From: Epithemia pelagica
Taxonomy: Eukaryota; Protista; Bacillariophyta
Assembly: GCA_946965045.2 (NCBI GenBank)
Contig: OX337235.1
Location: forward strand, 1,488,001-1,552,000
Direction: 5' to 3'
Length of the DNA: 64,000 nucleotides
Part shown: in pieces, positions 3,390 to 56,450 of the stretch
How the letters are laid out: the number at the start of each line of letters is the position of its first letter
Position numbering within the stretch: position 1 is the first letter of the stretch
Made by a program: the position numbers and the translations under genes
The notes under the pieces: model-generated
Databases searched by the model: none
The model's input: only the letters and a program-made list of their open reading frames with translations
Told to the model about the DNA's origin: nothing

Positions 3390-3904
3390 ATCCGAAACAA
3401 ACGTGTTTGTCATTTTGCCTAAGCATGGTCTCGCCACAAAAAACAATACACAAGACAAGGAATTATCTTGATTCAGAAGCCCGTATACAACCACTGACAA
3501 TGGGCCTGTCTGTCTCCACCTTGTCCACGTGTGTTTGTATACACAACAAATTCCAGAACACCAACAATACTCGAGGGGCTTGTCACCGCTGCTCCATCCA
3601 TGGGAGCAGGATTCGATAAAATAGAAAACCACTGATTCATGTAAATTGGCAACTTGGTCGCTTGTCTTGTGTACAAGATTGTAGATCCATCCAGTAAAGA
3701 TACTCGGCGGTTGTCGCCTTTCGTTTTGTTGTTGGAACAATTCAGTTGTCCCATGCCCCGGATCGTTCCTCCATGCTGAGTTTAACCATTTGATGACGAG
3801 AATGTGCGCTTGGTTCAATGATTGCTTTCAGTACGTCGTTTCAACACACCCAATAGCTAGCTCCATGTAACCAGACAGGTACCGATCCTTGGTGATGTTT
3901 GTCT

Positions 3905-39924: not shown

Positions 39925-40480
39925 CTAGTCCTCTGTCCTCCAAGTCATGGCTTCGTAGAGGGATTGGAAACTCAAAACCAGATAAAGAGCTATACTGATG
40001 GTTCCCAGGTTGAACGAAGCCGTGTTGGTGGTTGTTGTCGTCGTGTTAGAAGTAGTAGTACTGCCACTCTTCTCGGTGAGCTGTTGTCGTTGTTGTCGGT
40101 GTTTTTGGGAAGCATGTCCCACACAATAGCCAATCCACATGAACGCGACGGAAATAACAAAGGCATAGAGGGTATTCAAGCCTGCCGATAAGCCCATGAC
40201 TCCACCCGTGACGCCGCCCGCTAAATTGTTGAGTGTCATGGGCAAGGACGAGTGCAGCGAAGCAGGTTTGGTAGGCTTGTCTGTATGGATATTCGTATCA
40301 TCATCCTTCCGCTTCTCGTTTTCGTGCTGCTGTTGCTGCTGTTCTCGGTATTCTTGCAAGGCCAAAATGGCAAAGGCTGCCGATGCCAACAGCAAGGCCG
40401 TACGATTGTTGTTGGTTGGACTGGATGCGGTTGGATGGACGACACTGGTTGCCAGTTCCTCCTCTTTTATGGAATGCCTT

Positions 40481-40512
<32 letters not shown>

Positions 40513-40755
40513 TGCTATGGATGATGGTGTGGTGGTTCGAAACAGCCAGGTACCACCCTCACCACCCGCCATGGTGGCCATCCAACATCCCAACGCATTG
40601 CACAGGGAAATGCCCCACAAGACGTGGAGTGGCAAGGGTTTGCCAGCCAGACCCACCGACAAACCCACGACGAAATTATCTGTCGAGGAGGCCGATGCCA
40701 ACAGCAAGGCATGGAAGTGATGATGATGATGATGATGATACGGATCCAACAGCAT
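39925..40755 (-). CDS. MntP/YtaF-family membrane protein (putative Mn/metal exporter) with an N-terminal His run
   Basis: LLLASASSTDNFVVGLSVG and MTLNNLAGG correspond to the two repeats of the MntP/YtaF fold; HHHHHHHFH at the N-terminus. A short upstream exon is possible. Confidence 0.65.
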
Positions 40756-41006
40756 CCTCCTTGTCCGATATGATCTATGATCTAGGTAGGCAACGGAAAC
40801 AGACGTCTTGGTCTTGAAGACACAAGACCGATGAAGGACGCACGCGCTGAGGATGACCCATGTGCGACTCAATAAATATTCAAGCCGAAGCTGTCTGCCC
40901 TTCGACCGCTTCGCAAACCATTCACTCTGTCAAACAACTTCTCATTTTTTTTTCCAACCACCCGACCATCATGTCTTCATACATTGAAACATTCTCTTGA
41001 TCTGTG

Positions 41007-42836
41007 ATGATCCAATCTACGGCAGAACGACCCCCGAAGAGAACCAGACTTGGTATTTTCACCCCTTTTGTTGCGACTGGCGCCGTTTCCACAAGCAGAT
41101 CGTCTGCAGTTGCGGAAACGGAATACTTGGCCAAATTGACGCTGCAAGAAGTCGAAACAGACGAGATATTTTTCCCAGGGGAAGGCAGAGGTCATCCAGA
41201 TCAAATTGCTATCGGTAAAAATGTCGAGAATGCCTTACAAAGGTCATGGTACAAAGAGGAGGCGCTGCGCAATGCTGTTTATACAGACCTCATCCTAAAC
41301 CACGGAATTTCGTTTCCCGAATCCTCATATCACTGGGCTGGAGAGAGGAAGCTACGCTCTTTAACGAAAGCGGATCAGCGGTACAAAGAATGTGATCTAG
41401 CGCATATCTTGCTCGACTTTCACCAACTACTCACAGGGGCCGACGCGTCACTGCCGATCACTAGACTGCTGCACGGGCTCAATGTTACGACTACATCTCT
41501 CCCGGATATGACTATTCTGAAAGAGAATTGTCTCTGCTTTGGAGAATTCAAAAATAGTAACAAACACACGAATGAGAGCGCCGCGAAGCAGTGCACACTC
41601 TATCTCTACGCTTTGATCTATTTTTTCCGAGTTCGGCTGGGATTAGATGTCAAGGCAGTCTTTGGGTTTTGGGTTTGTGGGCCTGGTTGTTTCACAAGAA
41701 CCAAGGAGTATTCCGTTGGCTTCATCCGATTGTCCGCGCCGGAGCACTTGGGAGATTCTCTTGTTCCGCAGGTTTACTCAAGCTCTCACTGCGTCAAAAG
41801 CGTGGCTGGTATTCAACAGCTTGTCAGTTTCCTAAAATTTGGCAACGCTATTGAGGCAACTCGACTAAAAGCTGTTCATGCAGACTGCCGTATCCCTGCT
41901 CTCCTTTCAATTCCCAGAAAGCTATGGGAATCCCCATTGCTCGTATCAAATGGATCAGCATCCATGGTGTTCAGAGGTTTTGGAGAAGACATGCTCAGCC
42001 TACTGTTGCAGATCAAACGGTCGATTCCATTGTTCAAGTTCTACGTTTCATCGGTGCAGGAATTCGTGAAAAGCAAAGCTGATGGGTCCATTTTCTTCCT
42101 CAAGATACGTTTGAAGGATACGACTTTGCGCGAAAATCCGGCGTCAACAGTAATGGTGCTTTTGGACGAGAAGGCGGACTTTTTTCGAGAAATGTTTCCA
42201 ATTGATCCGACTGGTGATGGGAATTGTGGAATAATTTTGATGAACAATTGCGGCGATCGCCCCGGTGATTCGGTAGCTCTTCGAAACTTGGGTTTTCCTG
42301 CTTTCTGCACCCGCTTCGCAGTTCTTTGGCAGAAGACCATTGCGATATCGGATGCCGTACTGCACGGAGATTCTCTGCCTCATAACATTGTCTACAATGC
42401 AGGCAGTGGAATACTGGTTCTCATTGATTACGATGAAGGAATTGTTGGTAGTAGCGCTCACAAAAGAATCGTGGAGGAAGACGAAGAGACGCTATTTCCA
42501 TACTTGCGCTACCCCAATTTTCTACGGGCATGGAGAAACAGACAACTTTATACTAAAGTCCAATTGGTCGCATCATTTTTGCTGCTGCAAACCCAGATGT
42601 TTCCAGTAGCCGATGCCGTTGGCAGCATCGAGGGCACATCCGCCGGAATAACTGGAGTTGCCGAACCGTACATAACTCATATTGTAAACCTGCACGAGGC
42701 GGCCAAAACAGCAAACTCGTTCCTCAAGTGTACTAATGACGATGACCCAATGAACGCACGTGGTGTCAAGGTTGCCGAGAGCGTGTACCTACTAGTGGAG
42801 CTTTTTCAGGCAACAATGGCCTTGTTTGACGACTGA
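41007..42836 (+). CDS. PD-(D/E)xK (restriction-endonuclease-like) domain plus protein-kinase-like domain; resembles Crinkler/RHS-type effector architecture
   Basis: Nuclease: LPDMTI...FGEFK...KQCTLY. Kinase-like: FFLKIR, LHGDSLPHNIVY and LIDYDEG. Intronless. Confidence 0.7.
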   Translation: MIQSTAERPPKRTRLGIFTPFVATGAVSTSRSSAVAETEYLAKLTLQEVETDEIFFPGEGRGHPDQIAIGKNVENALQRSWYKEEALRNAVYTDLILNHGISFPESSYHWAGERKLRSLTKADQRYKECDLAHILLDFHQLLTGADASLPITRLLHGLNVTTTSLPDMTILKENCLCFGEFKNSNKHTNESAAKQCTLYLYALIYFFRVRLGLDVKAVFGFWVCGPGCFTRTKEYSVGFIRLSAPEHLGDSLVPQVYSSSHCVKSVAGIQQLVSFLKFGNAIEATRLKAVHADCRIPALLSIPRKLWESPLLVSNGSASMVFRGFGEDMLSLLLQIKRSIPLFKFYVSSVQEFVKSKADGSIFFLKIRLKDTTLRENPASTVMVLLDEKADFFREMFPIDPTGDGNCGIILMNNCGDRPGDSVALRNLGFPAFCTRFAVLWQKTIAISDAVLHGDSLPHNIVYNAGSGILVLIDYDEGIVGSSAHKRIVEEDEETLFPYLRYPNFLRAWRNRQLYTKVQLVASFLLLQTQMFPVADAVGSIEGTSAGITGVAEPYITHIVNLHEAAKTANSFLKCTNDDDPMNARGVKVAESVYLLVELFQATMALFDD

Positions 42837-43151
42837 CCTGTGGACCTCCACGACGTAGATCAATCCTCAATAGTTCATGAGCTAGACGTGCAACTTTTGC
42901 CTTTTGATGAACGAAAACAGTTCAGGCAACTGTAACATCGGCTATCCAAATCCAATCTCGCCAATCGAATCGATGACAGGTGCACCAATACTCAACCCAA
43001 TTCCTGTCTGCATCCGAGTGTCTTGAACACCATCATTACAGGAACCCACCGAGTCACAGGTTGTCGTTTTGAATGCTAGCGCATTGTGGTCCACAATGTG
43101 ACACTAAAACCCCAATACCTAGAGCCCGCTTCCATATCGATTAGGTAACAG

Positions 43152-43553
43152 GATTGTTGTTGGTTGAGTGGTCAGGACTGGATGCGGTCGGATGGACGAC
43201 ACTGGCTGCCAGTTCCCCCTCTTTAATGGAATGCCTTGTCGTCGTCGTTGTTGTTGTTGCTATGGATGATGATGTGGTGGTTCGAAACAGCCAGGTACCA
43301 CCCTCACCACCCGCCATGGTGGCCATCCAACATCCAACCCATTGCACAGGGAAATGCCCCACAAGACGTGGAGTGGCAAGGATTTACCAGCCAGACCCAC
43401 CGACAAAGCCGCGACGAAATTATCTGTCGAGGAGGTCGATGCCAACAGCAAGGCATGGAAGTGATGATGATACATGATACGGATCCAACAGCATCCCTCG
43501 TCCGATGTCAGGAGAGGAGGGGGCAGGCGCTGAGGATGACCCATGTGCGACTC
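43152..43553 (-). pseudogene. Truncated, frameshifted copy of the 5' half of the MntP/YtaF-like gene
   Basis: Direct repeat of 40404-40870, with indels and a frameshift after ISLCN; the 3' half is absent. Confidence 0.88.
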
Positions 43554-43715
43554 TATTGAAAACTCAAAAAATCGGATCTTTCGATGCTTTTCTTCGATCG
43601 GCATCGTGGATTGTCGAAGGAGACGGCGATGCTTTTACTCTAAGCACTGCTATTGTTTGACGGCCCTTCGGTATCGCAACGATTCTGCAGCTTTTACAGA
43701 GCCATCCTTTCGAAG

Positions 43716-46700
43716 ATGAAAGCCTTGGATGCCGTCGAAAAGGGCAAGGCGGATTGGCGCGAGTATCGATGTGTGCAGTTGGACAATGGTGTCACGGTCT
43801 GTTTGGTCCACGACGGAGAATCCAAAACGACCGCTGCAGCGGCCACGGTCCAGATTGGAGCGGCGGCCGATCCTCGATCCTTGTCGGGATTGGCCCATTT
43901 TTGCGAACACATGGTCTTTTTAGGATCGGAAAAGTATCCGATTGAAAATGAATACAAAAAGTTTTTGGCCCAACATGGCGGTCGATCCAATGCCTCCACT
44001 TCCTTGCATTTGACCACATTCAAGTTTGAAGTCTTGGCGGACCATGCCGAGCAAGCCCTGGACATTTTCAGCAACTTTTTTGTCAGTCCCCTCTTTACCA
44101 AATCGGGTACCGAACGAGAAGTCAATGCGGTCGATTCCGAAAACTCCAAGAATTTGACGGCCGATGTTCGTCGACGGTTGCAAATTATCAAGGATTTGTG
44201 TGATCCCCAACAATACTTTTCCAAATTCACGACGGGAAATTCACAAACATTGCCGACTCGAAATCCAGACGAATTGGTCCATGTTCGTGATGCACTCTTG
44301 GCCTTTCATCGAAAGCACTATCGACCCGACAACCTCACTGTGGTAGTGGCTGGACCTCAAACATTGGATCAACTCCAAGACTGGGTGGTTCCACGGTTTG
44401 GGACCATGCAAGCCCAGAGTTTTCCAGAAATGGTCCAGGATATGTCAGAGGTGGAACAGTTGGTTCATGAATCAGCCAAGGATGTGCCACCCTATGGGTT
44501 TCATGCACCTTCGGCATCTTTTACCAATCCGTTTAGTGTGCCAGTCCGAACGTCGTTGCCCTCACTGCTTACCATTAATCCAGTACGAAGTATGCGTCGC
44601 TTGACACTCCTCTTTCCTCTTCCTCCCGTCTTTAAAAATGCGGATCAATCTCCCACATCGGTTCTCTCGCATTTGTTGGGACACGAAGGACCGGACTCTC
44701 CTTTTGCCCTTTTGCAAAATCAAGGTCTCATTACCTCTTTATCGGCTGGCAATCGATTTTCTGAGCCCACCTTTTCTCTCTTTCAAATTGACATGGCACT
44801 TACCGAAACGGGAGAAACACGATGGAAAGAAGTGGTCGATGTCATTCTCCAGTATGGTCGGTTTCTGCATGGAGAAACCCTCCGTGCCAAACAGGGCAAC
44901 CCAAAGTCTTCACGGTTGTTGGAAATATGGCAAGAAAATATTCATCTTTCGCGCATCTTTTTTGACGAAACATCTCCTGGTCAGGTCTACAATCTTTGCC
45001 CCAGCTTGTCCTCCTCCATTGTGCAGAATGGAACCCAAAAGTCCATGAGTGCTGGATACATGCTCGATGAAGACATGTCCACCTTTCCCTTGACACAATT
45101 ACAAGAATTTGCTGCCTGTCTGGTGGCAAGCAACTGTTTGATTGAACGGTGTAGCAAAGACGCATGGGACGAAATGGAACAACAACAACAACAACAAGAC
45201 GGTTCGGCACCGTCCTCCAAGAAAACCGAACAATGGTACAATGTTCCCTATCATCTCTCGGATTTGGATCCGTCCGATGTGTCACGATGGAGTTCCGACC
45301 AGCCATCCAAACGCTTTTTGGATGCCAAACATTTGACACTTCCGGCGAGCAATCGCTTTATTCCCCGATCGCTCGAACTCTGTCCGGACTTGAGTGAAGA
45401 AGCCAGAGCTGGACCTCGGATTGACAAGGAAATGGATCCGCCCAAACTACTCATGAACGATGCCAGATTGGGACGCCTGTGGCATCGCCTCGATGATCGA
45501 TACGCCTTACCAAAGTCAAGTGTGACGCTCTTTTTGGCCAATGCGGCCGTCGACAATGTCAAAAGGGATGGTGTTTGGAGTCATGATCCCAAAACAGCAG
45601 CACAGTCCACTTTATTGGCAAGTATGTTCAACCAAGCCTTGGCCCAAGACACCTATGCTGCCTCCTTGGCAGGACTTGGATGGGACTTGAGCTTGTCATC
45701 CGGTGGCATTGGACTCAACTGCAGTGGCTTTTCCGATCGACTCCATGACTTGGCCTTGGAGGTGTTATCGGCCTTTTTGAAGCCTACCTTTATGACGGAA
45801 TTCCATTTTTCGGGAGCCAAGGATCGTTTGATTCGGTCTCTCAAAACCTTTTTTGAGTCTCGCCGGGCCGATTCCCATGCCGTGTACTACCGCAATCTCA
45901 TTCTGGACTCGTCCAGTGTGGATATTGAATCGTCCTTGCAGGCGGCGGAAGCTGTCACCCTCCAAGATGTCCAGGAGCATCACAAATCCCTTGTTCAAAA
46001 CAAGGAGGTGTTTCTGGACTGCTTTTTGTGTGGGAATGTGTCGGAAGGCGACGCCAAGACCTTTTTTGAAAGCGCTACATCACAGCTGTTGAAAGCGCGT
46101 TCGGGTCAGCCGTTGGCGGATGCCACCATGTGGATTCCCGGACCTACCGAAACCCGACTTGGTGCCAACGACGATATTGACTTGCACTTTTCGAGTCAGA
46201 ACCCACACGAGGAAAATGGATGTTTGGTCATGAGCTTTCAATCCAAGTTTCCTGGCTTTCGGGGACAAAAGTTGTCTTCGCCGGAAAGTATCAAGAATTC
46301 TAGTTCGCTCCGTCTTCTTAGCCACATACTTCGAGAGCCCTTTTTTGATGAGCTTCGCACCAAACAAGCACTGGGATATATCGTTCATTCCTACTATGAC
46401 TTTACCACATCCTTGACACCTGCAAGTCACAGTGATCTTATTGGACCGTCTTGTGTCCCGGTGGATTCTCTCACGGTGGAAATTCTGAGTCGCAAAGTCC
46501 CTCCACCCGAACTCAAACGACGTGTGGACGAGTTTTTTGTTAGCTTCAAAGACCTTCTCCGCAAACTCCCCACCTCCGAGATTGAATCGCACAAACAAGC
46601 CCTCAGCACCAAGTTGTTAAAACCTATTCAAAAACTGGGAACAGAAGTATCCACACAGTTCTCGCGCATTCGACGGTACGCGCCCGAAGTCGTCCAGTCG

Positions 46701-47096
46701 GGTGGTGGCGGTGGAGAGGAGGATATGCCGTGGAATATAACCAAAGAGTTGGCGGCAAGTATCCAAAAGTTGAGTCGACAGGATCTTTTGGAAACGTGGG
46801 ACCACATGGTTCCACGAGTATCCAGCATGGTCTACGGTTCAAGCTTTCCCTTAAAAACTGTTCCTCACGGACGCTCTCAAACCACCATCACCAACAGTGT
46901 GAAAGACGCCATTGCGCTTCGCCAAACCCTCCCTCACTACGACAATAAACCAACGCCATCAAATGCACCAATGAACCAAGTTATCCGAAATTTGGTGTCC
47001 AATCGTCCTATCATGGCAATTGCTGCGGTATCGTTTGCGAGTGTCGGTTACTTGGGGTGGACCGTTCTCGCGAAATCGAGGAAAATCGGTCGTTAG
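43716..47096 (+). CDS. M16A insulinase-family metallopeptidase (insulin-degrading enzyme-like) with a C-terminal hydrophobic helix
   Basis: GLAHFCEHMVFLGSEKYP (inverted HxxEH zinc motif), EREVNAVDSE and FFDELRTKQALGY. Confidence 0.92.
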   Translation: MKALDAVEKGKADWREYRCVQLDNGVTVCLVHDGESKTTAAAATVQIGAAADPRSLSGLAHFCEHMVFLGSEKYPIENEYKKFLAQHGGRSNASTSLHLTTFKFEVLADHAEQALDIFSNFFVSPLFTKSGTEREVNAVDSENSKNLTADVRRRLQIIKDLCDPQQYFSKFTTGNSQTLPTRNPDELVHVRDALLAFHRKHYRPDNLTVVVAGPQTLDQLQDWVVPRFGTMQAQSFPEMVQDMSEVEQLVHESAKDVPPYGFHAPSASFTNPFSVPVRTSLPSLLTINPVRSMRRLTLLFPLPPVFKNADQSPTSVLSHLLGHEGPDSPFALLQNQGLITSLSAGNRFSEPTFSLFQIDMALTETGETRWKEVVDVILQYGRFLHGETLRAKQGNPKSSRLLEIWQENIHLSRIFFDETSPGQVYNLCPSLSSSIVQNGTQKSMSAGYMLDEDMSTFPLTQLQEFAACLVASNCLIERCSKDAWDEMEQQQQQQDGSAPSSKKTEQWYNVPYHLSDLDPSDVSRWSSDQPSKRFLDAKHLTLPASNRFIPRSLELCPDLSEEARAGPRIDKEMDPPKLLMNDARLGRLWHRLDDRYALPKSSVTLFLANAAVDNVKRDGVWSHDPKTAAQSTLLASMFNQALAQDTYAASLAGLGWDLSLSSGGIGLNCSGFSDRLHDLALEVLSAFLKPTFMTEFHFSGAKDRLIRSLKTFFESRRADSHAVYYRNLILDSSSVDIESSLQAAEAVTLQDVQEHHKSLVQNKEVFLDCFLCGNVSEGDAKTFFESATSQLLKARSGQPLADATMWIPGPTETRLGANDDIDLHFSSQNPHEENGCLVMSFQSKFPGFRGQKLSSPESIKNSSSLRLLSHILREPFFDELRTKQALGYIVHSYYDFTTSLTPASHSDLIGPSCVPVDSLTVEILSRKVPPPELKRRVDEFFVSFKDLLRKLPTSEIESHKQALSTKLLKPIQKLGTEVSTQFSRIRRYAPEVVQSGGGGGEEDMPWNITKELAASIQKLSRQDLLETWDHMVPRVSSMVYGSSFPLKTVPHGRSQTTITNSVKDAIALRQTLPHYDNKPTPSNAPMNQVIRNLVSNRPIMAIAAVSFASVGYLGWTVLAKSRKIGR

Positions 47097-47139
47097 ATGG
47101 TCCATGGTCGAAAGCTATCTGCACTATTCGCCGCCATAT

Positions 47140-47335
47140 CTAGCTGCTACTCCTACCTTCTACTATGGGGTTTTCACTAATATGGGATCATCTTTTGCAG
47201 CCATCACACACTATATTATCTACCTACCTAGCTACTGCTACCTTCTACTATATACTCCTAGGGTTTTCACTATTTCTAACCCTAATAAGGGATCATCTTG
47301 TGCAGCCATCACACTTTCATGACACTATATTATCA
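47140..47335. repeat. Degenerate two-copy tandem repeat, G-poor on the + strand
   Basis: ctagct.ct.ctaccttctactat..ggttttcacta..gggatcatctt.tgcagccatcacac..cactatattatc occurs at 47140 and 47228. Confidence 0.75.
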
Positions 47336-47468
47336 TGATGGCAACGTCGACGAGGGTGATGAGAGACAAAGAATGCAAAGAATAACTCGATTTGTAATGA
47401 CGAGGTAATACTTTGATCTTGATGCTGGACATTCCTTGTTGCGATTGGAAGAGGGAAGAGCTAATAAT

Positions 47469-49112
47469 ATGGATCATTTGGCAACCGACGACGAACGACG
47501 CGCTCGCTGGTATTCCACACAATGGCCACGATATGTGCAAGTTCGACCAGCCACACAGATTTCCGAGTTACGTCGTACCGTTCCATGTCACGAGGAGAGG
47601 AACGAGTCTGCTGACAGGAGCAACCATCCCCACGAAGAGGAATCCTTATTTGTGTACAGCATGGACTGGACCATGGCTACATCATCATCACCAATCAACG
47701 ACAACCACCACGAGAAGGAGAGTACGAATGTGATCCGCGAAACAATTCAACAGCACGGATTTGCGATTGTATCCAATGTATTAACCAAGCATGATTGTGA
47801 ACATGCCTTGGAATTGGCACGCGATTGGTGGGAAGCGGCCTGTTTTGCCGATCATCATACTATGCAAACCCACAACAGGACAAATAAGACAGTGGAAGCA
47901 TCATCGCCCCTCAATCAAGTATCGAGAGAAAATGAGGAGGTCTGTAAAGAGGATGCAGTTGCTCGGAAAGTTCCTCAACATTCGTTGGAAGGTGGCATGT
48001 TGCCCTTTTATGGATCCGGTCATTCGACATTTGCCTGGTACGTCCGCAGTCGACCACGTCTTCTTCGAGTGTTTCAAGCATTGCACAACATTCACCCTAC
48101 TAATAACAACAAAGAAAAAGACATTGATGAACATGGTTTCGAAAAAGAAGATTCTCAGTTACTCTCTTCTCTTGATGGCATTGTCTTGTGGTCGCGTCAT
48201 CACCAAGCTCCCACCGATGCTGGATGGTTTCATGTGGATCAAAATCCCATTACCAAACCTCATTTTTGTTCCATTCAAGGATTGGTCAATTTACTTCCCA
48301 CGAACCCTGAAACGGGTGGCAATGCCTTGGTAGTGGGATCGCACCAGTATTTTCCACATCATTATTGTAGTTCCAATGGTACCACCACTGAGAATGATGC
48401 TGTTCCTGATAACCGCCAAAACCAACAAAAACGCAAGAACATGACCAAGGGAGAAGCAAATGATTCGCAGCAACCAAGAGTCGGTGAGTCGGCGCCCTTG
48501 TTCTACCAGAAACGGTTGGAGGAACTACAAGGTGATGATTGGATGGAAATTGATCCCTTGGATACCACAGTCTTGCAACCGGACAAAATTGTCACACTTT
48601 TATTGAATGCCGGAGACTTGTTGCTTTGGGATTCCCGTACCGTACATTGCTCGTATCCATCCATCAAGTTTCGTTCCGACCATAAACATCAAGAACAGCC
48701 CAATCACCAGCCACAATCCCATGCGGACAAATCCACCGAAGTGGCTCGTCATGACGGGTTTGTTCGTGCGGCAACCACCGTGACAATGATTCCAGCGCCC
48801 GGCAACCCCACTACAATTTCCCTTCAAGTATTGAAAGCACGAAAGGCAAGTTGCTCTCTCCCGTCCCTGCGAACCCTCACTCACTGGATTGATCACGTCC
48901 AACCGCTGGGAGAGGAACGGCCGAAAATGGCTAATCTCGAACAAGAACGGATTCAAGCCATGTTACAATGGGAACAAGAGCCACGACCATCGTGCGACGA
49001 AGATTCCTCCACAAGACGCAAGAAGAAAAAGGTTCTCCTTGATTTTGGGGAATTGAGTCTGTTGCAGAAACGGTTGGTGGTTGGCGACTCACCGCCATTG
49101 TTGGAAGGATAG
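47469..49112 (+). CDS. Second PhyH-like 2OG-Fe(II) oxygenase
   Basis: Motifs WFHVDQNP, IQGLVNL, GGNALVVGSH and AGDLLLWDSRTVH. Confidence 0.85.
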   Translation: MDHLATDDERRARWYSTQWPRYVQVRPATQISELRRTVPCHEERNESADRSNHPHEEESLFVYSMDWTMATSSSPINDNHHEKESTNVIRETIQQHGFAIVSNVLTKHDCEHALELARDWWEAACFADHHTMQTHNRTNKTVEASSPLNQVSRENEEVCKEDAVARKVPQHSLEGGMLPFYGSGHSTFAWYVRSRPRLLRVFQALHNIHPTNNNKEKDIDEHGFEKEDSQLLSSLDGIVLWSRHHQAPTDAGWFHVDQNPITKPHFCSIQGLVNLLPTNPETGGNALVVGSHQYFPHHYCSSNGTTTENDAVPDNRQNQQKRKNMTKGEANDSQQPRVGESAPLFYQKRLEELQGDDWMEIDPLDTTVLQPDKIVTLLLNAGDLLLWDSRTVHCSYPSIKFRSDHKHQEQPNHQPQSHADKSTEVARHDGFVRAATTVTMIPAPGNPTTISLQVLKARKASCSLPSLRTLTHWIDHVQPLGEERPKMANLEQERIQAMLQWEQEPRPSCDEDSSTRRKKKKVLLDFGELSLLQKRLVVGDSPPLLEG

Positions 49113-49227
49113 GCTTAATCCGTCGCCCAGGCCGCGGTAGACAATTCCATCTTATGTATGTCATAAGAATAGGATAGTCTATAAATTAAGAAGTTACTTA
49201 TATATATATATATGGAAGGATAGGCTT
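49102..49227 (+). mobile_element. 96-bp insertion (49117-49212) ending in (TA)n, flanked by a 15-bp target-site duplication
   Basis: tggaaggataggctt occurs at 49102-49116 and 49213-49227. The paralogous copy at 51906-51920 has one copy and no insert. Confidence 0.75.
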
Positions 49228-49476
49228 GACGTTGAGGGTATTCACATGCTCCACAATACTTCATCAACTATAGGCCCCGCCAAACCTCGATCGACCACTG
49301 TTCATCATGAGTTTCTTCTTTGTTGTAACTCTACTCCATCTTCGGTACTGCGATTCGTTTCTCCCGATTCATTGCGTTGACAATCGTTCCTCACTTTAGC
49401 GTAGCTCCACATTTTTAATATGTTTGACGCATAATTGGGAAGACAAACCAATCGATTGACCTCCAATCAAGTCAAG

Positions 49477-51348
49477 TTAGGAACTGTCCTCCCTCGACTT
49501 CTCAACAACGTAATTCGCTCCGTTGTTGTACATCGCGATCACGAACCCTGCAACGGCCCTATTACTACCACGTTGTTCCATGTCGCGGCGGGTCTGAATG
49601 TACCCAAGAAGCTGTGCGTGAGCATTCGCAAGAAAAGAAGAAGTAGGAGCATTCTTCGTCTGCTTGAGTTCTAGAATCACCACACAGGTATCCGAACCGA
49701 ACGTCACATCTGTTCGCTTCCCCGTCGCCGGCAGACGATCTTCTTGCGTTACTTCCGCGTTGGTATTGAGAGTGGTGAATGCTTCACTGAGGACGTGCGA
49801 CTGAAATTGAAGCTCCAATATATTGTTCTTCTCGTCTGATGCTGCCCAGGACATTAAACTTGCCATACAGGTATCTGAAATACTCGTCACGAAGTCCATT
49901 AGTATGTCCTCGCCACTAGAGTAGAGCTCTTCCTTTGCATTTAGAGACGTCAATTGCTGCAGGGATGACCGCAATGTCGTCAATAAAGGTTCAAGAATAT
50001 CTTTCCGGTAACAGTCAGAGGTCATGTGGAATACTGGGTTTCTTAAGGTACCCCGTGCTGACACAACACCGACGTGAAACAACAGAGTCAAATAATCTCC
50101 CACATCGATATCGGCTGCCAAGATAGCTTCTAAACTCAGTTGAGTGTTGAGCCTATACCCTGTGATCTGGTGGCCATCGGCCAGCATCTTTACTACGGTT
50201 CGGAGATTTCGTGCAGTTTCGAGCACTTTGTACACTGACGAAGGCACGGGTTCACACCCAGCGCGAACACTGTTAAAGCGCAATAATTCTTCCCTACCAT
50301 CAGAATCCTTGAGCAACATGTTCATGCATTCATTGACCAGCGCTGTATGAAAGAGAGAGCTTCCACCAACGAAGCAAAGATTGTTGAAATGGCGTTTGAT
50401 TCGCTCGAAGGCAAGGTCACGCTCTTCATCATCTTTGAACGGGACTGCATCGTGGACATTGTTGATCATCCTTCCGACATCTGCCTCAGTCAGCCCAACA
50501 GCATCTGCCATTGCTGGGTCAAAAGTGAGCACCTTGACGTTGAGACCACTCATCTCCCTAATTCCAATGGGTGTAACACCTGTGAGGAATAGTTTCGCAT
50601 GAGGGTGCACATCTAGAGTCGCTTTGCATGATCTGAAAAAACTGAAGTAGTTCGAAAAGACCCGCCTCATTGTGTCTCGGATCTCTGTGTATTGGATCTG
50701 ACTGCGCTGAGGAAGAAACTGTAGTACGGCATTCCTGATAGGCAGGTCGTACTCGTCCACTAGAAATAACAAACGCCCCCCCACGTGTCTGACTGCAGTG
50801 GTCAGAGCCATAATACGAAAGTCGACGGAGTCTCCATCTAAATCTTCCAAACAACCACTGAATTCTTCTTGAAGCTCCTTGTTTTGGCTCAACATTTGAC
50901 GAATCGCCAATTTGATGCAACCTCCAACTTTTTGGTCGATTGCCGTACCAACCTCTTCCCACGTTGCTTCCCAGGATGACGCAATGAAACCAAAGTCTAT
51001 ACGAACTACGAACCATTTGTTCCTGTCGTTTTCGCCGGGGGAATATTGCAGTTCAGAGTCGATTTGAGAAAAACTGTTGACTGAGAACAGCTCTTCCGCG
51101 AGGGATAGCAGCGTAGTTTTCCCCAGTTGCATAGGCCGGCATAGACATACAGAATGACTGTCGTTTGTAAACATCCTCTCGAGGTACAAACTGTTGTCGC
51201 GGTAATAACCGCGGCGGTCACTTGAATAAATTTCAGTGGCTTTCTGGTTCCGGCCGGGGAAGGTGATGATCTTGTTTTTTTTTGACGTTGGTTGTTCTCC
51301 ATTGCTACCCGCTCGATCTCGGTGATTAGTAGACGACGTCTTCATCAT
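49477..51348 (-). CDS. AAA-ATPase-like domain plus C-terminal PD-(D/E)xK nuclease
   Basis: Walker A CRPMQLGKTT, Walker B LFLVDEYD, LFLTGVTP; nuclease motif RTDVTF..ILELK..AQLLGY. Intronless. Confidence 0.85.
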   Translation of the reverse strand: MMKTSSTNHRDRAGSNGEQPTSKKNKIITFPGRNQKATEIYSSDRRGYYRDNSLYLERMFTNDSHSVCLCRPMQLGKTTLLSLAEELFSVNSFSQIDSELQYSPGENDRNKWFVVRIDFGFIASSWEATWEEVGTAIDQKVGGCIKLAIRQMLSQNKELQEEFSGCLEDLDGDSVDFRIMALTTAVRHVGGRLLFLVDEYDLPIRNAVLQFLPQRSQIQYTEIRDTMRRVFSNYFSFFRSCKATLDVHPHAKLFLTGVTPIGIREMSGLNVKVLTFDPAMADAVGLTEADVGRMINNVHDAVPFKDDEERDLAFERIKRHFNNLCFVGGSSLFHTALVNECMNMLLKDSDGREELLRFNSVRAGCEPVPSSVYKVLETARNLRTVVKMLADGHQITGYRLNTQLSLEAILAADIDVGDYLTLLFHVGVVSARGTLRNPVFHMTSDCYRKDILEPLLTTLRSSLQQLTSLNAKEELYSSGEDILMDFVTSISDTCMASLMSWAASDEKNNILELQFQSHVLSEAFTTLNTNAEVTQEDRLPATGKRTDVTFGSDTCVVILELKQTKNAPTSSFLANAHAQLLGYIQTRRDMEQRGSNRAVAGFVIAMYNNGANYVVEKSREDSS

Positions 51349-51583
51349 GGTAGTACTTCGCTGTGCTCTTCTAGAGACAGGAGGATTGATTGCAAGAGTG
51401 TGAAACACTGAAACACGGCAATCCGTTCTGCCAAAGAAACACCATCGTTACGAGCAAATGATAATAAATCCGTCCGCTCGTCGACCGTACGCTTCACTAT
51501 CAAGGTTTTCGTTCAGCCGGAAGATTCCGAAAATCACGGAAGTTTGCTTGGCAGGCCTTTTTGTATTGCGGTTTCTCGCACGA

Positions 51584-51967
51584 GTGACAATGATTCCAGC
51601 GCCCGGCAACCCCACTACAATTTCCCTTCAAGTGTTGAAAGCACGAAAGTCAAGTTGCTCTCTCCCGTCCCTGCGAACCCTCACTCACTGGATTGATCAC
51701 GTCCAACCGTTGGGAGAGGAACGGCCGAAAATGGCTAATCTCGAACAAGAACGGATTCAAGCCATGTTACAATGGGAACAAGAGTCACGACCATCGTGCG
51801 ACGAAGATTCCTCCACAAGACACAAGAAGAAAAAGGTTTTCCTTGATTTTGGGGAATTGAGTCTGTTGCAGAAACGGTTGGTGGTTGGCGACTCACCGCC
51901 ATTGTTGGAAGGATAGGCTTGACGTTGAGGGTATTCACATGCTCCACAATACTTCATCAACTATAGG
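51584..51967 (+). pseudogene. Orphan duplicate of the 3' end and 3' UTR of the PhyH-like gene (48780-49274)
   Basis: Direct repeat with 6 substitutions counted in the ~335-bp coding part; it lacks the 96-bp insert. Confidence 0.9.
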
Positions 51968-52424
51968 TTCGACAAATTTATCGCACGCTCCAAAATACTG
52001 GCCTCATGAACTATGGGTTCGACAGTTTATCTTTGTGGGCAATCAATCAATCCAGGCCAGGGACAAAGAACCGGTCTTCATGCGACAAATGATGATCAAA
52101 CATGGACCCATTGTCGAGAAAGACTAGCGCACATAGACAATAGTTGCTGAATGATTGCACATGACAAATCGCTGTGTGTCCTACAAGAACTACAAACCAC
52201 ACAGTTTGCTATGAACGAGAAAAGTGTTATGGTGGTCTTTGGTTTATATATTTACAGCTACCAAGACAACTCCTTTCCTTTGACTCTCTTTACGCTACGT
52301 GGGGTAATCCCTGGGTTCACTGTTTCTCGCGCTAGTACAGAGTAAAACCAGTTAAAGGAACATTCCTAGTTCATCCCCCGACGTCGATATAACCAGACAG
52401 GCAAAAGCAGTGAAAGGAATTTTC

Positions 52425-55400
52425 CTAGTTCCACACCCGACGTCGATAAAAGAGCACGTAGGCGGCCGAAGACACCACGGAATCACCTGATTCTCCCACA
52501 CTCTTGACAGTCGAATCATCAAAGAGTTGCCATTCCTTGGATATTTCTCTTTCATTCCAGTTCCGAGCAAACGCGGTGTAGTGACCAAATCCCATTCGGC
52601 CATAATGATTCACCACCGCAAATAAATCGTACATGGCCGGAACTGAATCCTCCACAAAAGACTCTTGACCATTTCCATGTCGAGCACAATGGGTACCCAT
52701 GTCCAAGCCGTCTAAGGGGAAGTTCACCAAGGTCTCCAACTTGTCGCGGCGCATGACATTTTTAAACTCAAACCGCTTCAAATGGACAACCAGAATGTTG
52801 GGAAGGCGCCAAAGTTCCATGGTTTTCATAGCTCGCACATGTTCTTTACATTTAGAACAATACCACATGTTTCGTTCGTCCAGTCGTTCGGGTTTGACAA
52901 ACGTTTCAAAGCACTGGTCCAATGAAACACCACCCTTTCTGTTATTCTGGGCTCGACGTTTCGCTGTCGAATCCTGCCAACTACTGTGGTTGTTAAAAAA
53001 GACAAAGCGATCCAAGTCCAATGTTGCATTCACGGCTTCTGGTCCTGTCTTGTCTTCCGCCAAATCTCTCCATTCGACATGGAGGAACACAAAGTCTTCC
53101 AACGCATTCTCCCCAACAAAACGGACCAACGTTTCCTCGGACTGTCGGGGAAGAATCGAGGTCATTTTCGAGACAGCACCATCTTGCTGAGGACCCATCA
53201 AATCGGGAAAGACTGTCATTCCTTTTCCTCTTGCATCGAGAAGGCGGAACTCAATCGCATCCTTGTACTGCTGACGTACTTCCTCCTCGACTTTATCTTC
53301 CACTAAATGCCACAAATACTCCCATACTTCGCGACAAGACCAATCTGCCGACCAAGAAACCAACAGCGGAATTCCAATAGCTGTTGACGAATTTGGTCGT
53401 TCTCGTTCGCCGGCGTCATCATCTCCCTGTTTCGAGTCCACAACCTTGTGACACAAAATTCCATGAATCACAGGTTTATGGTTTCCGGCACCGTCGTCGT
53501 CATCCAAGGACGCCGCTTCGTAGGCCACCAACAAATTGGACACATTCAATGTGGAAACCATTTCCTGGCGTTGTGCGATACGGACAATTTCGTGCTCCTG
53601 ACATTCCGACAAGTGTAGTTTTGAGGACGGAATTCCTGTCAGTTTGGACAATTCACGAATCACCTCCGATATTGGGTTGTTTCTTCTGACATGTACTGCA
53701 TAGCGAGTAGGACACGAGCCCAAAATCCCTTGTGATGGATTGCAGGCTTTAATGACAAAGATACCTAGCGTGACAATTGCCGTTTGCTGTTGCGGAATTT
53801 CCAAACTCACGTGATTAAAGGCATCAAAGGAAACCGAGACTCGATTGCATTGTGGACAAATGCAAGAACTCTTGAACTGTCCATAGAACGAGTCCATTAC
53901 CAAACTGTCGTTGCGGCGTTTGTGGGAATCCCAGGCCAATGCCCCGGCCACAGCCATGTCTTGGTCTCCGTCCACGTCAGGCATTTCTACATACGGTGCC
54001 TTGCGAATTCGATTCACATCTTCGTGAAGACCATCCAATAGGTAGGCTAGAAATTCCTGGGCATCGTGTTGTAAGAAACCGGCAAACCGAGGAGCGAATT
54101 GGGAAATGGCACGTTTTAACGCATTGGGACTTGTACTTCGAACACCTGTCTTGGTCCACAAATCCTTCATGACCGTCTCGTAGGCCACAGCGAGTTTTCC
54201 TCCCGTACCCAATGGATTGGATTTGTTTAAATCTTGTTTAAACTTTCCCGACAAAAAGTGTCTGGTGAGTGGCGTGGCGTGACTAAGGCACTGCAAGGCC
54301 GCATTCATGAAACAAGTATTGCCCAGATTGTTGAGGCCCACACGTCCATAAGAGAGTTCGGCAAATTTTCGAGCCACTGCCGTCGAGTTGTCTTGTTTAC
54401 TCAAGACACGGCACGTCGCCTTATGCAATGGCCAATGATTCTCTTGACAGCCTCGATCACAGTAATGCACCATGGAACATCTTGTACACCGAAGATTGAC
54501 ATGCAAGGGTGCATGACAAGCACCACAATACTTAGTTTCCACGTTCCGCGTTGCTTCTGTAGCAGGTTCCGGTCCAAGGTAGATTGGAATCGAAACATGA
54601 CCTGTTCGGACATTGCGTGTCGCTCGTCGACAAATCGAAGGGGTCGTTTCCGTATACCATTCTCGCAGAGCCTTGTACACTTCACGTGGAATCAATTCAT
54701 AATGGTAACCACGAACAAGATTGGGTTGGAGCGGAGGAGGTAAAGATTTGGATTTCCCTTCCTTTTGATTGTTTGCAGGAGCTGCATGCATGTACCACTG
54801 CTCAACAAAGACTTGTTGTGTCGTTCGGACGGCTCCGCTGGAGCTGCCTAGCGGCATAGACGACGGAGGGACCAGAAAGAGATTGGAATTATCAATGGGT
54901 CCAGGAGAGGGATGCGCTGTGACCTTATTCTTTCCTGTCGCCTTCTTGTTCATCTCCTCTTCATTTTCGTTACTAGTAGTAGGCAATGTGGGGAGCGTCG
55001 CACCCTTTGGAAGGTAGGAAACAAGTCCATGTTGTTGTGGTTCTTTGCCTGTTGGATGCACCAACTCGACGTGGAAACAAAACTTGCACCACCATTGCCA
55101 ATCTACCAAAAAGAAAGCTTCTCCATGTTGAGCTGCAGGCGTTGCAGCAGCGGATTGTGTTGTCTGCTGTTTGGGCAGACGTCCCTTGAGCAGTCGCAGC
55201 ACAGCGTGTCTTTGATTTGGACCGTCGGGAGACCGTGACACTTGAGCAGTGCTTGGGCCACTACAACTGCTACTGCGAGGAGGAACCGTTTTGCGACTGG
55301 GATGTTTGGTCGATACAACACCACCATTTGTGGTACTTGGTCGGGGAATTTGTTTTGTTTGTTGCAAGGCAAGGTTGTGTTTTTGATACGTGTGTTCGTC

Positions 55401-56450
55401 GTTCCGTGGAGGGATTGGTTGCTTGTCTTGTTTGATTTGATGCAGTAATCGTTGAATCCGTTGCGCGGCTTCGGCAATGGTTTTCTTGGTACCAAAACGT
55501 TCCTTTTCAGATATGGAGTCATCTTGTTCCAGCCATTGCAAGGAAGCTTGCAGGTCTGCCTTGGCCGAATGAATCAGGTCCTGTATCAGCAATGGTTCCT
55601 GTTTCTGAACGTTCACATCCTTGGCCCGATTTTCTCGAGCGACGGCGCGGCGAAACCACACCTTGTACAATCTCAAATTACTGACAGATACAGAGGCCCG
55701 TTGTAGATTGCCAGATTCACTAGACGATGCTTGTTGTTGTTGTTGTTGTTGTTGTTTCAGAATCGATTCGTACTGGTCTTGTTGTTCCAAGACGCGTGTA
55801 CAAGATTCTTCGGCAGCTCGATAATCCTCCAGTTTGATGAGTGCCATGGCTCGATTGGATAAAAGAGAAGCTTGCGTGGTATAAAAGTCCAAGTCCTGAT
55901 CTTTCTTTTCCGACAAGCGCTGCAAGCCTTCGTCGTAGGCTTCCAGTGCTTCTCGATAGCGTTTTCCTGTATAGGCCCGATTTCCTTCCTCTTTCCATTC
56001 CGTTACACTTTTGTTGCGTCCTTCTTCCCCGGACAAGGAGGAAGCAGATGACGATGAGGTAGAATCCGTAGAAGCAGAAGGAGGATCACCCCCACGACCT
56101 GCCGTTCGAGTTATTCGTCGCGTGGTTGTGGCAACTTCTGGAATCGATGGCATGAATTTGACAGCAGAGTCATCTTCGCCGCGACTTGAGCTTCGAGTGC
56201 TGCTAGCGGTGGACGATGTTGCGTAACGATTCTGAAAGGAGCTCATTTCTCCATCGACCCCGACTTTCGAATGTGTGGGCTGTGATTGGTTGGTGTTTTT
56301 TGCGTGTCGAAGATTCTCCGGTCGGTGAGATTGAGACCCTATCATTCCTCCTGAGGTTTTCACGAGTTCCTTGTGGGTGCCGTCCAATTCCTCATTCCCA
56401 ATCACATACTGTTTGGCAACTTCGATGCTATTACTCTTATTATTCGCCAT
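52425..56450 (-). CDS. Ubiquitin-specific protease with TPR, DUSP-like and MYND zinc-finger domains
   Basis: USP boxes GLNNLGNTCFMNAALQCL, QHDAQEFL and GFGHYTA. MYND CGAC..CTRC..YCDRGCQENHWPLHKATC. TPR WKEEGN..SNRA..FRRA. Confidence 0.93.
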   Translation of the reverse strand: MANNKSNSIEVAKQYVIGNEELDGTHKELVKTSGGMIGSQSHRPENLRHAKNTNQSQPTHSKVGVDGEMSSFQNRYATSSTASSTRSSSRGEDDSAVKFMPSIPEVATTTRRITRTAGRGGDPPSASTDSTSSSSASSLSGEEGRNKSVTEWKEEGNRAYTGKRYREALEAYDEGLQRLSEKKDQDLDFYTTQASLLSNRAMALIKLEDYRAAEESCTRVLEQQDQYESILKQQQQQQQQASSSESGNLQRASVSVSNLRLYKVWFRRAVARENRAKDVNVQKQEPLLIQDLIHSAKADLQASLQWLEQDDSISEKERFGTKKTIAEAAQRIQRLLHQIKQDKQPIPPRNDEHTYQKHNLALQQTKQIPRPSTTNGGVVSTKHPSRKTVPPRSSSCSGPSTAQVSRSPDGPNQRHAVLRLLKGRLPKQQTTQSAAATPAAQHGEAFFLVDWQWWCKFCFHVELVHPTGKEPQQHGLVSYLPKGATLPTLPTTSNENEEEMNKKATGKNKVTAHPSPGPIDNSNLFLVPPSSMPLGSSSGAVRTTQQVFVEQWYMHAAPANNQKEGKSKSLPPPLQPNLVRGYHYELIPREVYKALREWYTETTPSICRRATRNVRTGHVSIPIYLGPEPATEATRNVETKYCGACHAPLHVNLRCTRCSMVHYCDRGCQENHWPLHKATCRVLSKQDNSTAVARKFAELSYGRVGLNNLGNTCFMNAALQCLSHATPLTRHFLSGKFKQDLNKSNPLGTGGKLAVAYETVMKDLWTKTGVRSTSPNALKRAISQFAPRFAGFLQHDAQEFLAYLLDGLHEDVNRIRKAPYVEMPDVDGDQDMAVAGALAWDSHKRRNDSLVMDSFYGQFKSSCICPQCNRVSVSFDAFNHVSLEIPQQQTAIVTLGIFVIKACNPSQGILGSCPTRYAVHVRRNNPISEVIRELSKLTGIPSSKLHLSECQEHEIVRIAQRQEMVSTLNVSNLLVAYEAASLDDDDGAGNHKPVIHGILCHKVVDSKQGDDDAGERERPNSSTAIGIPLLVSWSADWSCREVWEYLWHLVEDKVEEEVRQQYKDAIEFRLLDARGKGMTVFPDLMGPQQDGAVSKMTSILPRQSEETLVRFVGENALEDFVFLHVEWRDLAEDKTGPEAVNATLDLDRFVFFNNHSSWQDSTAKRRAQNNRKGGVSLDQCFETFVKPERLDERNMWYCSKCKEHVRAMKTMELWRLPNILVVHLKRFEFKNVMRRDKLETLVNFPLDGLDMGTHCARHGNGQESFVEDSVPAMYDLFAVVNHYGRMGFGHYTAFARNWNEREISKEWQLFDDSTVKSVGESGDSVVSSAAYVLFYRRRVWN

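Follow-up and report, generated by a model that had tools for sequence, protein, structure and literature searches.

The window (the whole stretch of DNA analysed here, 64,000 nucleotides) carries two unrelated nuclease genes, ORF1 and ORF2, each bracketed by a long direct repeat of part of a neighbouring host gene. The two resulting structures, cassettes 1 and 2, are separated by an M16 peptidase gene. Their features are as follows, with positions in the window and the boundaries of repeats and blocks taken from gapped alignments.

39925-40872, minus strand: MntP-like host gene, intact, with an open frame and its ATG at 40862 (Pfam PF02659, E=2.2e-7)
40404-40872: A1, left repeat of cassette 1, comprising the 5' half of the MntP-like gene and some 10 bp of upstream sequence
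40873-43151, plus strand: B1, unique block of 2279 bp holding ORF1 between 131 bp of 5' and 315 bp of 3' sequence
40918-43518, plus strand: segment copied to contig 7 (G000:C7:758880-761479, 98.4% identical), ORF1 and most of the orphan A1'
41004-42836, plus strand: ORF1, 609-610 aa, PD-(D/E)xK (RecB-like, QxxxY) nuclease and kinase-like domain
43152-43553: A1', orphan, frameshifted copy of the MntP-like 5' half; a G-rich filler occupies about 43509-43528
43653-47096, plus strand: M16 (insulysin-like) peptidase host gene (Pfam)
47436-49112, plus strand: PhyH-like host gene, intact (Pfam PF05721)
48780-49274: A2, left repeat of cassette 2, covering the final 111 codons of the PhyH-like gene and its 3' flank
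49102-49212: SINE-like repeat and 15-bp target duplication, in A2 only
49275-51583, minus strand: B2, unique block of 2309 bp holding ORF2, with no further copy in the genome
49477-51408, minus strand: ORF2, PF09820 P-loop ATPase and C-terminal D..ELK..QxxxY nuclease motif, probable start 51345
51584-51967: A2', orphan 3' end of the PhyH-like gene, sharing its frame with the ATG at 51458 upstream of it
52425-56450, minus strand: USP/UCH deubiquitinase host gene, right-hand neighbour of cassette 2 (Pfam PF00443)

Anatomy of the two cassettes

A repeat search and gapped alignments recovered both direct-repeat pairs at the positions given in an earlier note on this DNA. The two cassettes share the anatomy P-A-B-A'-Q, with blunt junctions and a unique B. 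As that note had described, the intact host gene (MntP-like or PhyH-like) lies on the left and the orphan copy on the right in both cases, ORF1 and ORF2 are open and uninterrupted, and the cassettes have neither TIRs (no inverted repeat of at least 40 nt between 38 and 54 kb) nor a transposase domain detectable with Pfam. Structured RNA was not found in the same 38-54 kb interval, and a comparison of B1 with B2 revealed no shared termini. Repeats of such length and identity cannot have arisen by chance. The 64-kb window contains three kb-spaced direct-repeat pairs, two of which bracket its sole two nuclease genes, the third being part of a retroelement; by our own count, repeats bracket 2/2 nuclease genes and none of about 18 ordinary genes (Fisher p about 0.005).

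In cassette 1, A1 and A1' are 92.9% identical over 393 aligned bases (K2P 0.075) and differ by seven indel events, among them frameshifts and the exchange, in the right copy, of about 77 bp for some 20 bp of G-rich filler. The boundaries of B1 are those set by the alignment, its sole other copy in the genome being on contig 7. If B1 was inserted, the sequence upstream of the MntP-like gene was lost except for about 10 bp, and its promoter must come from B1.

In cassette 2, A2 and A2' differ by 6 substitutions in 384 bases (98.4% identity, K2P 0.016), so that the two repeat pairs are of different ages, as previously proposed. A2 alone bears a 111-bp addition, in which about 96 bp belong to a dispersed SINE-like repeat and 15 bp to its target duplication; this addition accounts for the two offsets observed in the cassette (2804 and 2693). 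Since the SINE-like repeat is confined to A2, its insertion postdates the duplication that gave rise to A2 and A2'. Judging from the reading frame, a 152-aa chimera formed by A2' and the sequence from the upstream ATG is possible. The two PhyH-like genes are ruled out as recent duplicates, with 32% identity over 114 aa.

A genome search found neither a second haplotype nor a paralogous copy of the window locus. The M16 peptidase shows 71% identity to an Epithemia clementina protein; a metagenome scan with the M16 profile retrieved 37 loci, but tblastn detected neighbours like MntP, PhyH or USP at none of them, so that the scan yielded no synteny information.

Domains of the ORF1 and ORF2 products

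Motifs and predicted fold confirm the earlier assignment of ORF1 as a nuclease-kinase with a PD-(D/E)xK motif. In the AF2 model (pLDDT 81), residues 1-40 are disordered and residues 41-300 adopt a restriction-endonuclease fold according to VIA-align, with BpuSI (Z 8.2), DrdV (7.6) and HsdR (6.9) among the matches and many other chains of this fold in the top 50; the Z values are middling and the list is consistent. The nuclease residues S-x-P-D168, G-E181-x-K183 and Q196-x3-Y200 lie on strands 169-173 and 176-183 and on helix 190-211 of the model, and all except D168, which is replaced by N in two contig 16 paralogues, are invariant across 18 family members. The C-terminal domain is matched by Foldseek to many kinases with probability 1.0 (TM 0.45-0.54 on the target), and the residues H454-G-D456..N461 and D475-x-D-E478 are invariant in the family, whose conserved motifs can be listed as S-x-PD, GExK, QxxxY, HGD..N and D.DE. 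ORF1 itself matches no Pfam family, even at E ≤ 10, and its paralogues show weak matches to APH, EcKL and Pkinase_fungal.

The identification of ORF2 as an ATPase-nuclease also holds, through PF09820 (AAA-ATPase_like; E=6.4e-13, 49.4 bits for a gathering cutoff of 26.1) and a C-terminal D..ExK motif. Across 15 homologues, the Walker residues G96-K97 and D218-E219-x-D221 are invariant, and the D567..E580-L-K582 motif (D..ELK) is kept. Pfam did not detect PF08011 (PDDEXK_9) on ORF2 itself, although a distant homologue bears PF08011 and PF09820 together; PADLOC returned weak matches of the C-terminal part to PDC-S41 and LmuA.

The ORF1 family counts 11 members on 6 contigs of this genome, and the 10 family clusters sampled (10/10) consist of unnamed environmental, ENA or Logan proteins. 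A viral vector was rejected as the carrier, since no relatives of either family were found in IMG/VR.

The contig 7 copy and other members of the ORF1 family

A copy of the ORF1 cassette on contig 7, newly found here, contains the B1/A1' junction and on either side stops short of the structure seen in the window, which indicates that the copying proceeded from contig 8 to contig 7. Its 2601 bp represent about 95-97% of one repeat unit (2681-2748 bp), in register with the A/B junction, with only about 46 and 35 bp missing at the ends. It matches A1' at all diagnostic positions, without chimerism, and the dN/dS between ORF1 and the copied gene is 0.44. The insertion site is TE-rich and has no MntP homology. 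The sequences flanking the copy (L028:3804-3880 and 6476-7561) adjoin each other on contig 6 (C6:3201737-3201825 and 3201824-3202964), and this contig 6 locus is a paralogous empty site for the insertion. The insertion junction displays 0-8 bp of imperfect microhomology.

These observations bear on the mobility suggested in the earlier note. The movement of the ORF1 cassette as DNA is established by the contig 7 copy and the contig 6 empty site, whereas self-mobilisation by the nuclease is not evidenced. The giant duplications of 400-500 bp proposed there are present at both cassettes but not at the sole insertion whose empty site is visible. Most homologues elsewhere have no flanking direct repeats (on contigs 7, 2, 6, 9 and 11, and copies 2 and 3 on contig 16), an outcome that the earlier note had listed among those speaking against its model, although one contig 16 member has flanking direct repeats of 103 and 177 bp. 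Scars around old paralogue insertions would have decayed. The paralogue loci on contigs 2 and 6 likewise gave no second haplotype, and the three target sites (cassettes 1 and 2, and contig 7) show no common sequence motif.

Two other modes of transfer were rejected. Capture by a Helitron, Harbinger or Pack-type element is discarded, as the junctions show no element ends and the contig 7 Harbinger is located outside the insertion. Retroposition fails as well, since a poly(A) tail is missing from B1, from B2 and from the contig 7 copy, and upstream sequence is part of B.

Origin of the cassettes and comparison with known systems

Both cassettes look like scars of a transposase-free gene insertion at the DNA level, B1 and B2 being, as we infer, the inserted parts at the window locus. 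Our preferred reading, held tentatively at a probability of roughly 0.45, is the repair-mediated insertion of selfish toxin-type genes with a long and variable target duplication. A promoter-to-terminator fragment of about 2.3 kb with a toxin-type nuclease gene would have entered gene-dense DNA at a chromosome break, pasted by the host break-repair or replication machinery without the involvement of a transposase, of terminal repeats or of a target duplication of fixed length. Repair synthesis would have duplicated 0.38-0.47 kb of target on both sides, either by filling in a break with a wide stagger or by switching template and re-entering the target upstream of the break, leaving the whole host gene on the left and an orphan piece on the right. 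Nuclease genes would probably be the usual cargo, as selfish or toxin-like genes with Spok- and Crinkler-type layouts whose new copies are favoured, and their products may themselves supply the breaks; the selfish or toxin-antidote nature of ORF1 and ORF2 is presumed from their architecture. Later, as the sequence shows, a nearly full repeat unit of cassette 1 (ORF1 and A1') was copied to contig 7 and captured by end joining.

The same scar around two unrelated enzymes, together with the variable length of the duplication (0-8, 384 and 469 bp), points to a cargo-independent, repair-type process rather than to an enzyme-defined stagger. The intact state of ORF1 and ORF2, with their family-invariant catalytic residues kept, is consistent with insertion. 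Against this reading, a long duplication is absent from the one insertion whose empty site can be seen, most paralogues are without flanking repeats, and the MntP-like gene would have had to take its promoter from B1.

An alternative that we regard as somewhat improbable is that the nuclease genes are old residents and that A1' and A2' came later, when a break at the gene's far end was repaired with 0.4 kb of templated filler or dispersed duplicate sequence taken from a distance of 2.3 kb; loci of DNA-cutting proteins may be break-prone, which might account for the break. The final structure predicted is formally identical, the MntP-like gene would retain a promoter shared with ORF1, and the filler in A1' is a second repair scar indicative of repeated breakage. 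However, one and the same unusual event would have to recur within 11 kb and on both occasions place the copy precisely across a nuclease gene; moreover, the ORF1 block is shown to insert elsewhere, and both families are patchy and multi-locus. Mobilisation by the nucleases themselves, through widely staggered nicks producing giant target duplications or through released unit-length fragments or circles that re-insert, appears distinctly unlikely. Duplications are known to result from paired nicks, the PD-(D/E)xK catalytic residues are intact in both cargos, and the near-unit contig 7 copy fits cutting at the same site in both repeats, or a circle linearised at the A/B junction; this coincidence of length is merely suggestive, at p 0.05-0.1 by our rough estimate. 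Such behaviour would have to be common to two unrelated enzymes, yet the duplication length is not fixed and is zero in practice on contig 7, the three targets share no motif, B1 and B2 share no terminal sequences, and no observation shows that the nucleases cut the insertion sites, as the earlier note had envisaged.

The Campbell-type integration also put forward there, in which a circle holding B and the host fragment A enters the chromosomal gene by a single crossover, predicts exactly the A-B-A' topology, and a circle formed by recombination between A1 and A1' would fit the near-unit contig 7 copy. As a first step it is impossible, because the circle must already bear the host fragment and so presupposes a filled locus; moreover, the contig 7 copy follows A1' throughout, and integration at a site without MntP homology was therefore not homologous. 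We consider this route very unlikely overall. Hardly credible is either an assembly artefact or an ordinary tandem duplication in which [A+B] was doubled and its second B then lost: tandem and segmental duplications do exist in the family (a pair on contig 8 with a period of 2090 bp, and a 13.5-kb array on contig 16), but the second B would have to be deleted exactly in both cassettes, and a remnant of the B start was searched for after A' and not found. A collapsed or duplicated assembly is excluded because the repeat copies have diverged, one of them with a private SINE-like insert.

A bolder version of the insertion reading would see in these genes (REase plus kinase, ATPase plus REase) transposase-free mobile selfish elements of diatoms, which release unit-length fragments or circles from their own flanking duplications, insert at self-made breaks with variable giant duplications that protect the host gene, and carry orphan pieces to new chromosomes; we think this improbable. 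If the scars do mark a regular insertion route, nuclease genes of the Spok and Crinkler kind would spread through a eukaryotic genome without a transposase, their insertions in gene-dense DNA would spare host genes by duplicating hundreds of target bases, and the process would be a source of orphan gene fragments and chimeric reading frames and of their transfer to other chromosomes. The filled site, the empty site and the unit-length copy offer a concrete, testable case. Single-gene toxin-antidote drivers are known so far mainly from fungi, and the locus bears on the question of such drivers in diatoms.

Among known systems, the Spok genes of Podospora and other fungi encode a nuclease domain followed by a kinase domain, and Spok3 and Spok4 sit in a Spok block of 74-167 kb whose position varies between strains (Vogan et al., 2019, PMC6660238). 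Compared by architecture alone, ORF1 resembles them as a single intronless gene with a PD-(D/E)xK nuclease followed by an ELK/Kdo-like kinase, and its family is, like the selfish Spoks, multi-copy with varying chromosomal positions. In contrast, no coiled-coil N-terminus is seen in ORF1, the Spok cysteine cluster C-x3-C-x13-C-x5-H-x7-H is reduced to C-x3-C (225-229) with only C229 invariant, and ORF1 and ORF2 occupy small cassettes with long target duplications instead of a large block. According to the passage on Zhang et al. (2016) in PMC5289972, the Crinkler/RHS-type (CR) toxins include REase plus kinase and P-loop NTPase plus REase layouts; ORF1 corresponds to the former and ORF2 to the latter, in agreement with the likeness noted earlier, and these are the two commonest layouts as far as that passage goes. 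Pfam detects no Crinkler N-terminal header (Ubl/LxLFLAK) in them, and the PF09820 family of ORF2 is shared with bacteria, with no secretion or effector role implied.

Regarding the mode of insertion, the cassettes recall transposons in having an inserted block between direct target duplications. These are fixed at 2-15 bp in transposons, whereas here they are variable and reach 384-469 bp, and the cassettes have no terminal repeats, transposase or multi-copy element ends as expected of classical DNA transposons. MMBIR/FoSTeS-type or paired-nick events share the foreign segment, the variable flanking duplication and the blunt or microhomology junctions, but in the present case whole selfish-type genes are inserted, recurrently for one class of cargo. 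Finally, free-standing homing endonuclease genes are similar as nuclease genes that spread as DNA beside host genes without a transposase; homing produces no long duplication and has an allelic target, whereas here one copy reached an unrelated TE-rich site.

Two direct-repeat cassettes and their setting

The surveyed assembly is eukaryotic (60.5 Mb in 23 contigs), the window being positions 1488001-1552000 of contig 8. The M16 peptidase encoded between the two cassettes shares 71% identity with an Epithemia clementina protein, its remaining good matches all being diatom, which identifies the host as a raphid diatom and probably a member of the Rhopalodiales. Only three kb-spaced direct-repeat pairs occur in the whole 64-kb window: the two cassettes, as described in the earlier note and both recovered by our repeat search, and one retroelement pair (24.4-32.7 kb). 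Gapped alignment set the following boundaries:

40404-40872: A1, 5' half of the MntP-like host gene
40873-43151: B1, 2279-bp block containing ORF1 (41004-42836, +)
43152-43553: A1', orphan copy of A1
48780-49274: A2, 3' end of the PhyH-like host gene
49275-51583: B2, 2309-bp block containing ORF2 (49477-51408, -)
51584-51967: A2', orphan copy of A2

The remaining ~18 long ORFs of the window are ordinary host genes. The repeat search found no inverted repeats of at least 40 nt between 38 and 54 kb, in agreement with the earlier description of the cassettes; no structured RNA was found in the same interval, and a metagenome scan gave no synteny for the locus. The 3' end of the neighbouring USP/UCH gene (52259-53361) matches a section of a ~2.1-kb repeated element on contigs 6 and 5 (L016, C6:871404-875295; L017, C5:3481751-3485622) at 85-90% identity, as if a repeat had picked up a piece of the host gene.

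Across the 393 bases that align, A1 and A1' are 92.9% identical (K2P 0.075); seven indel events separate them, and A1' is frameshifted. Near the right end of A1', a G-rich filler of ~20 bp (43509-43528) stands where A1 has ~77 bp from the 5' region of MntP, and is followed by a 26-bp block with the MntP start codon. A2 and A2' differ by six substitutions in 384 bases (K2P 0.016). A2 alone carries a 111-bp addition (49102-49212), composed of a ~96-bp dispersed SINE-like repeat ending in a TA run and a 15-bp target duplication; its insertion point is exactly the stop codon of the PhyH-like gene. This repeat has copies at six or more other loci, with 81-86% identity copies on contigs 10, 13, 9, and 3 (L019-L024), and its insertion postdates the A2/A2' duplication. 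An open frame (51458-51916, +) begins in the ORF2 upstream region and reads on, without a shift of frame, into A2', the orphan PhyH fragment; it could encode a chimeric product of 152 aa.

A second copy of the ORF1 cassette and the distribution of paralogs

Window positions 40918-43518 are copied on contig 7 (C7:758880-761479) with 98.4% identity, including ORF1, 86 bp upstream, the complete 3' flank, the B1/A1' junction, and most of A1'. This copy sides with A1' against A1 at all diagnostic positions and its right end falls ~35 bp short of the end of A1'; the window structure is therefore the older one, and contig 8, or a similar structure, was the donor. Because the copy terminates within the G-rich filler, this site may be a recurrent break point. 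The sequences flanking the copy (L028:3804-3880 and L028:6476-7561, in the contig 7 locus) are contiguous on contig 6 in a genome search, at 3201737-3201825 and 3201824-3202964 as placed by the search-match coordinates, with 80-85% identity; the contig 6 site is an empty paralogous site of the contig 7 insertion. No long flanking duplication was found at this copy, its right junction showing an imperfect microhomology of at most 8 bp.

Between the two ORF1 copies (41004-42836 and L028:3966-5798) there are 32 differences, of which 19 are non-synonymous (dN/dS 0.44). Divergence is higher in the coding sequence (32/1833) than in the adjacent non-coding sequence (5/682; Fisher p=0.06), which may reflect fast protein evolution. 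The surroundings on contig 7 are rich in transposable elements. A PIF/Harbinger-type transposon (L028:495-3705, C7:755494-758704) with a DDE_Tnp_4/Plant_tran ORF and 46-nt terminal inverted repeats is nested between the halves of another dispersed repeat (L028:1-494 and 3706-3753), and a young high-copy element (L028:7563-10000, from C7:762562 onward) has at least 25 copies on many contigs with 96-98% identity.

The ORF1 family comprises 11 members, spread over six contigs. A 13.5-kb segmental-duplication array on contig 16 (C16:950000-1020000, L033-L040; 97-99% identity) holds four of them, and a tandem pair on contig 8 (L009/L010, C8:612572-618717) has a period of 2090 bp and stretches at 100% identity. 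In two cases a frameshift or an intron divides the gene into two frames: an ORF1-family member on contig 3 (C3:1495271-1497020) and an ORF2-family member on contig 11 (L013, C11:1327088-1331110). Of the homologs elsewhere, which the earlier note suggested checking for flanking repeats, some have them. Copy 1 on contig 16 has direct repeats of 103 and 177 bp on either side, the left one interrupted by a 3.5-kb insert, and another contig 16 member has a weak 52-bp pair; none were found within 1-1.5 kb of flank for the ORF1-family singletons of contigs 2 and 6, nor within 3.5-5 kb for the ORF2 paralogs of contigs 9 and 11. Flanking duplication is thus recurrent, short of universal, and old scars would have decayed.

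Origin of the flanking duplications

The order of host gene, repeat, block, repeat copy, and next gene has three formally equivalent descriptions: insertion of the block with a duplicated target, insertion of the block together with the repeat copy, or insertion of the repeat copy across a resident gene. We favor insertion of the block, because B1 has provably been inserted elsewhere (contig 7), because both cargos are genes of a selfish type with a patchy, multi-locus occurrence, and because the pattern strikes the only two such genes among ~20 in the window. Tandem duplication followed by exact deletion is disfavored, and so is an origin by retroposition or through a known transposon that captured the gene. 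An assembly artefact, which the earlier note had named as a possible refutation, is excluded because the repeat copies have diverged.

As to how the block would have been inserted, the duplication length is variable (~0-8, 384, and 469 bp), the scar is common to two unrelated enzyme families, and neither a common motif among the target sites nor shared termini between B1 and B2 were found. These observations point away from an enzyme-defined staggered cut and toward scars left by the host, through break repair or template switching. Self-mobilization by the encoded nucleases, as first proposed, and a circular intermediate are less probable alternatives, for which the contig 7 copy is the main argument: its 2601 bp, against a repeat unit of 2681-2748 bp, are in register with the A/B junction and fit a unit-length intermediate, which may be a coincidence (p 0.05-0.1 as a rough estimate).

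Cargo proteins and their likeness to known systems

ORF1 has no sequence matches in Pfam, NCBIfam, PADLOC, or PDB. A profile search retrieved 449 representative clusters (E<=1e-3), those sampled being all unnamed environmental proteins. Across 18 aligned family members, S-x-PD is conserved (D is replaced by N in two contig 16 paralogs), whereas G-E-x-K and Q-x3-Y are invariant, and the three together form a RecB-like PD-(D/E)xK signature; H-G-D..N and D-x-D-E, also invariant, are the catalytic loop and metal site of a kinase. In the AlphaFold model (pLDDT 81), the C-terminal half matches protein kinases with a Foldseek probability of 1.0, and residues 41-300, modeled separately, match restriction-endonuclease-fold nucleases (BpuSI, Z 8.2; DrdV, 7.6; HsdR, 6.9; with many more in the top 50). 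Look-alikes in the ESM Atlas come from fungi and oomycetes and are kinase-like. ORF2 matches PF09820 in Pfam, retains Walker A and B, and carries at its C-terminus a D..ELK nuclease motif conserved across 15 homologs, so that the PD-(D/E)xK-type motif previously noticed in both cargos seems to be borne out. ORF2 is related to proteins of diatoms, found in a Bacillariaceae MAG, in Cylindrotheca and Attheya, and in one MMETSP transcript.

The two commonest modules of Crinkler/RHS-type toxins are REase+kinase and NTPase+REase (PMC5289972), layouts that ORF1 and ORF2 share, respectively, although the Crinkler header is absent here. The REase+kinase layout is also that of the fungal Spok killers (PMC6660238), to which ORF1 is similar as far as their described architecture goes, but with an incomplete cysteine cluster. 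The likeness of ORF1 to Crinkler and Spok proteins, and of ORF2 to Crinkler proteins, is one of layout, with membership in either family at most a possibility.
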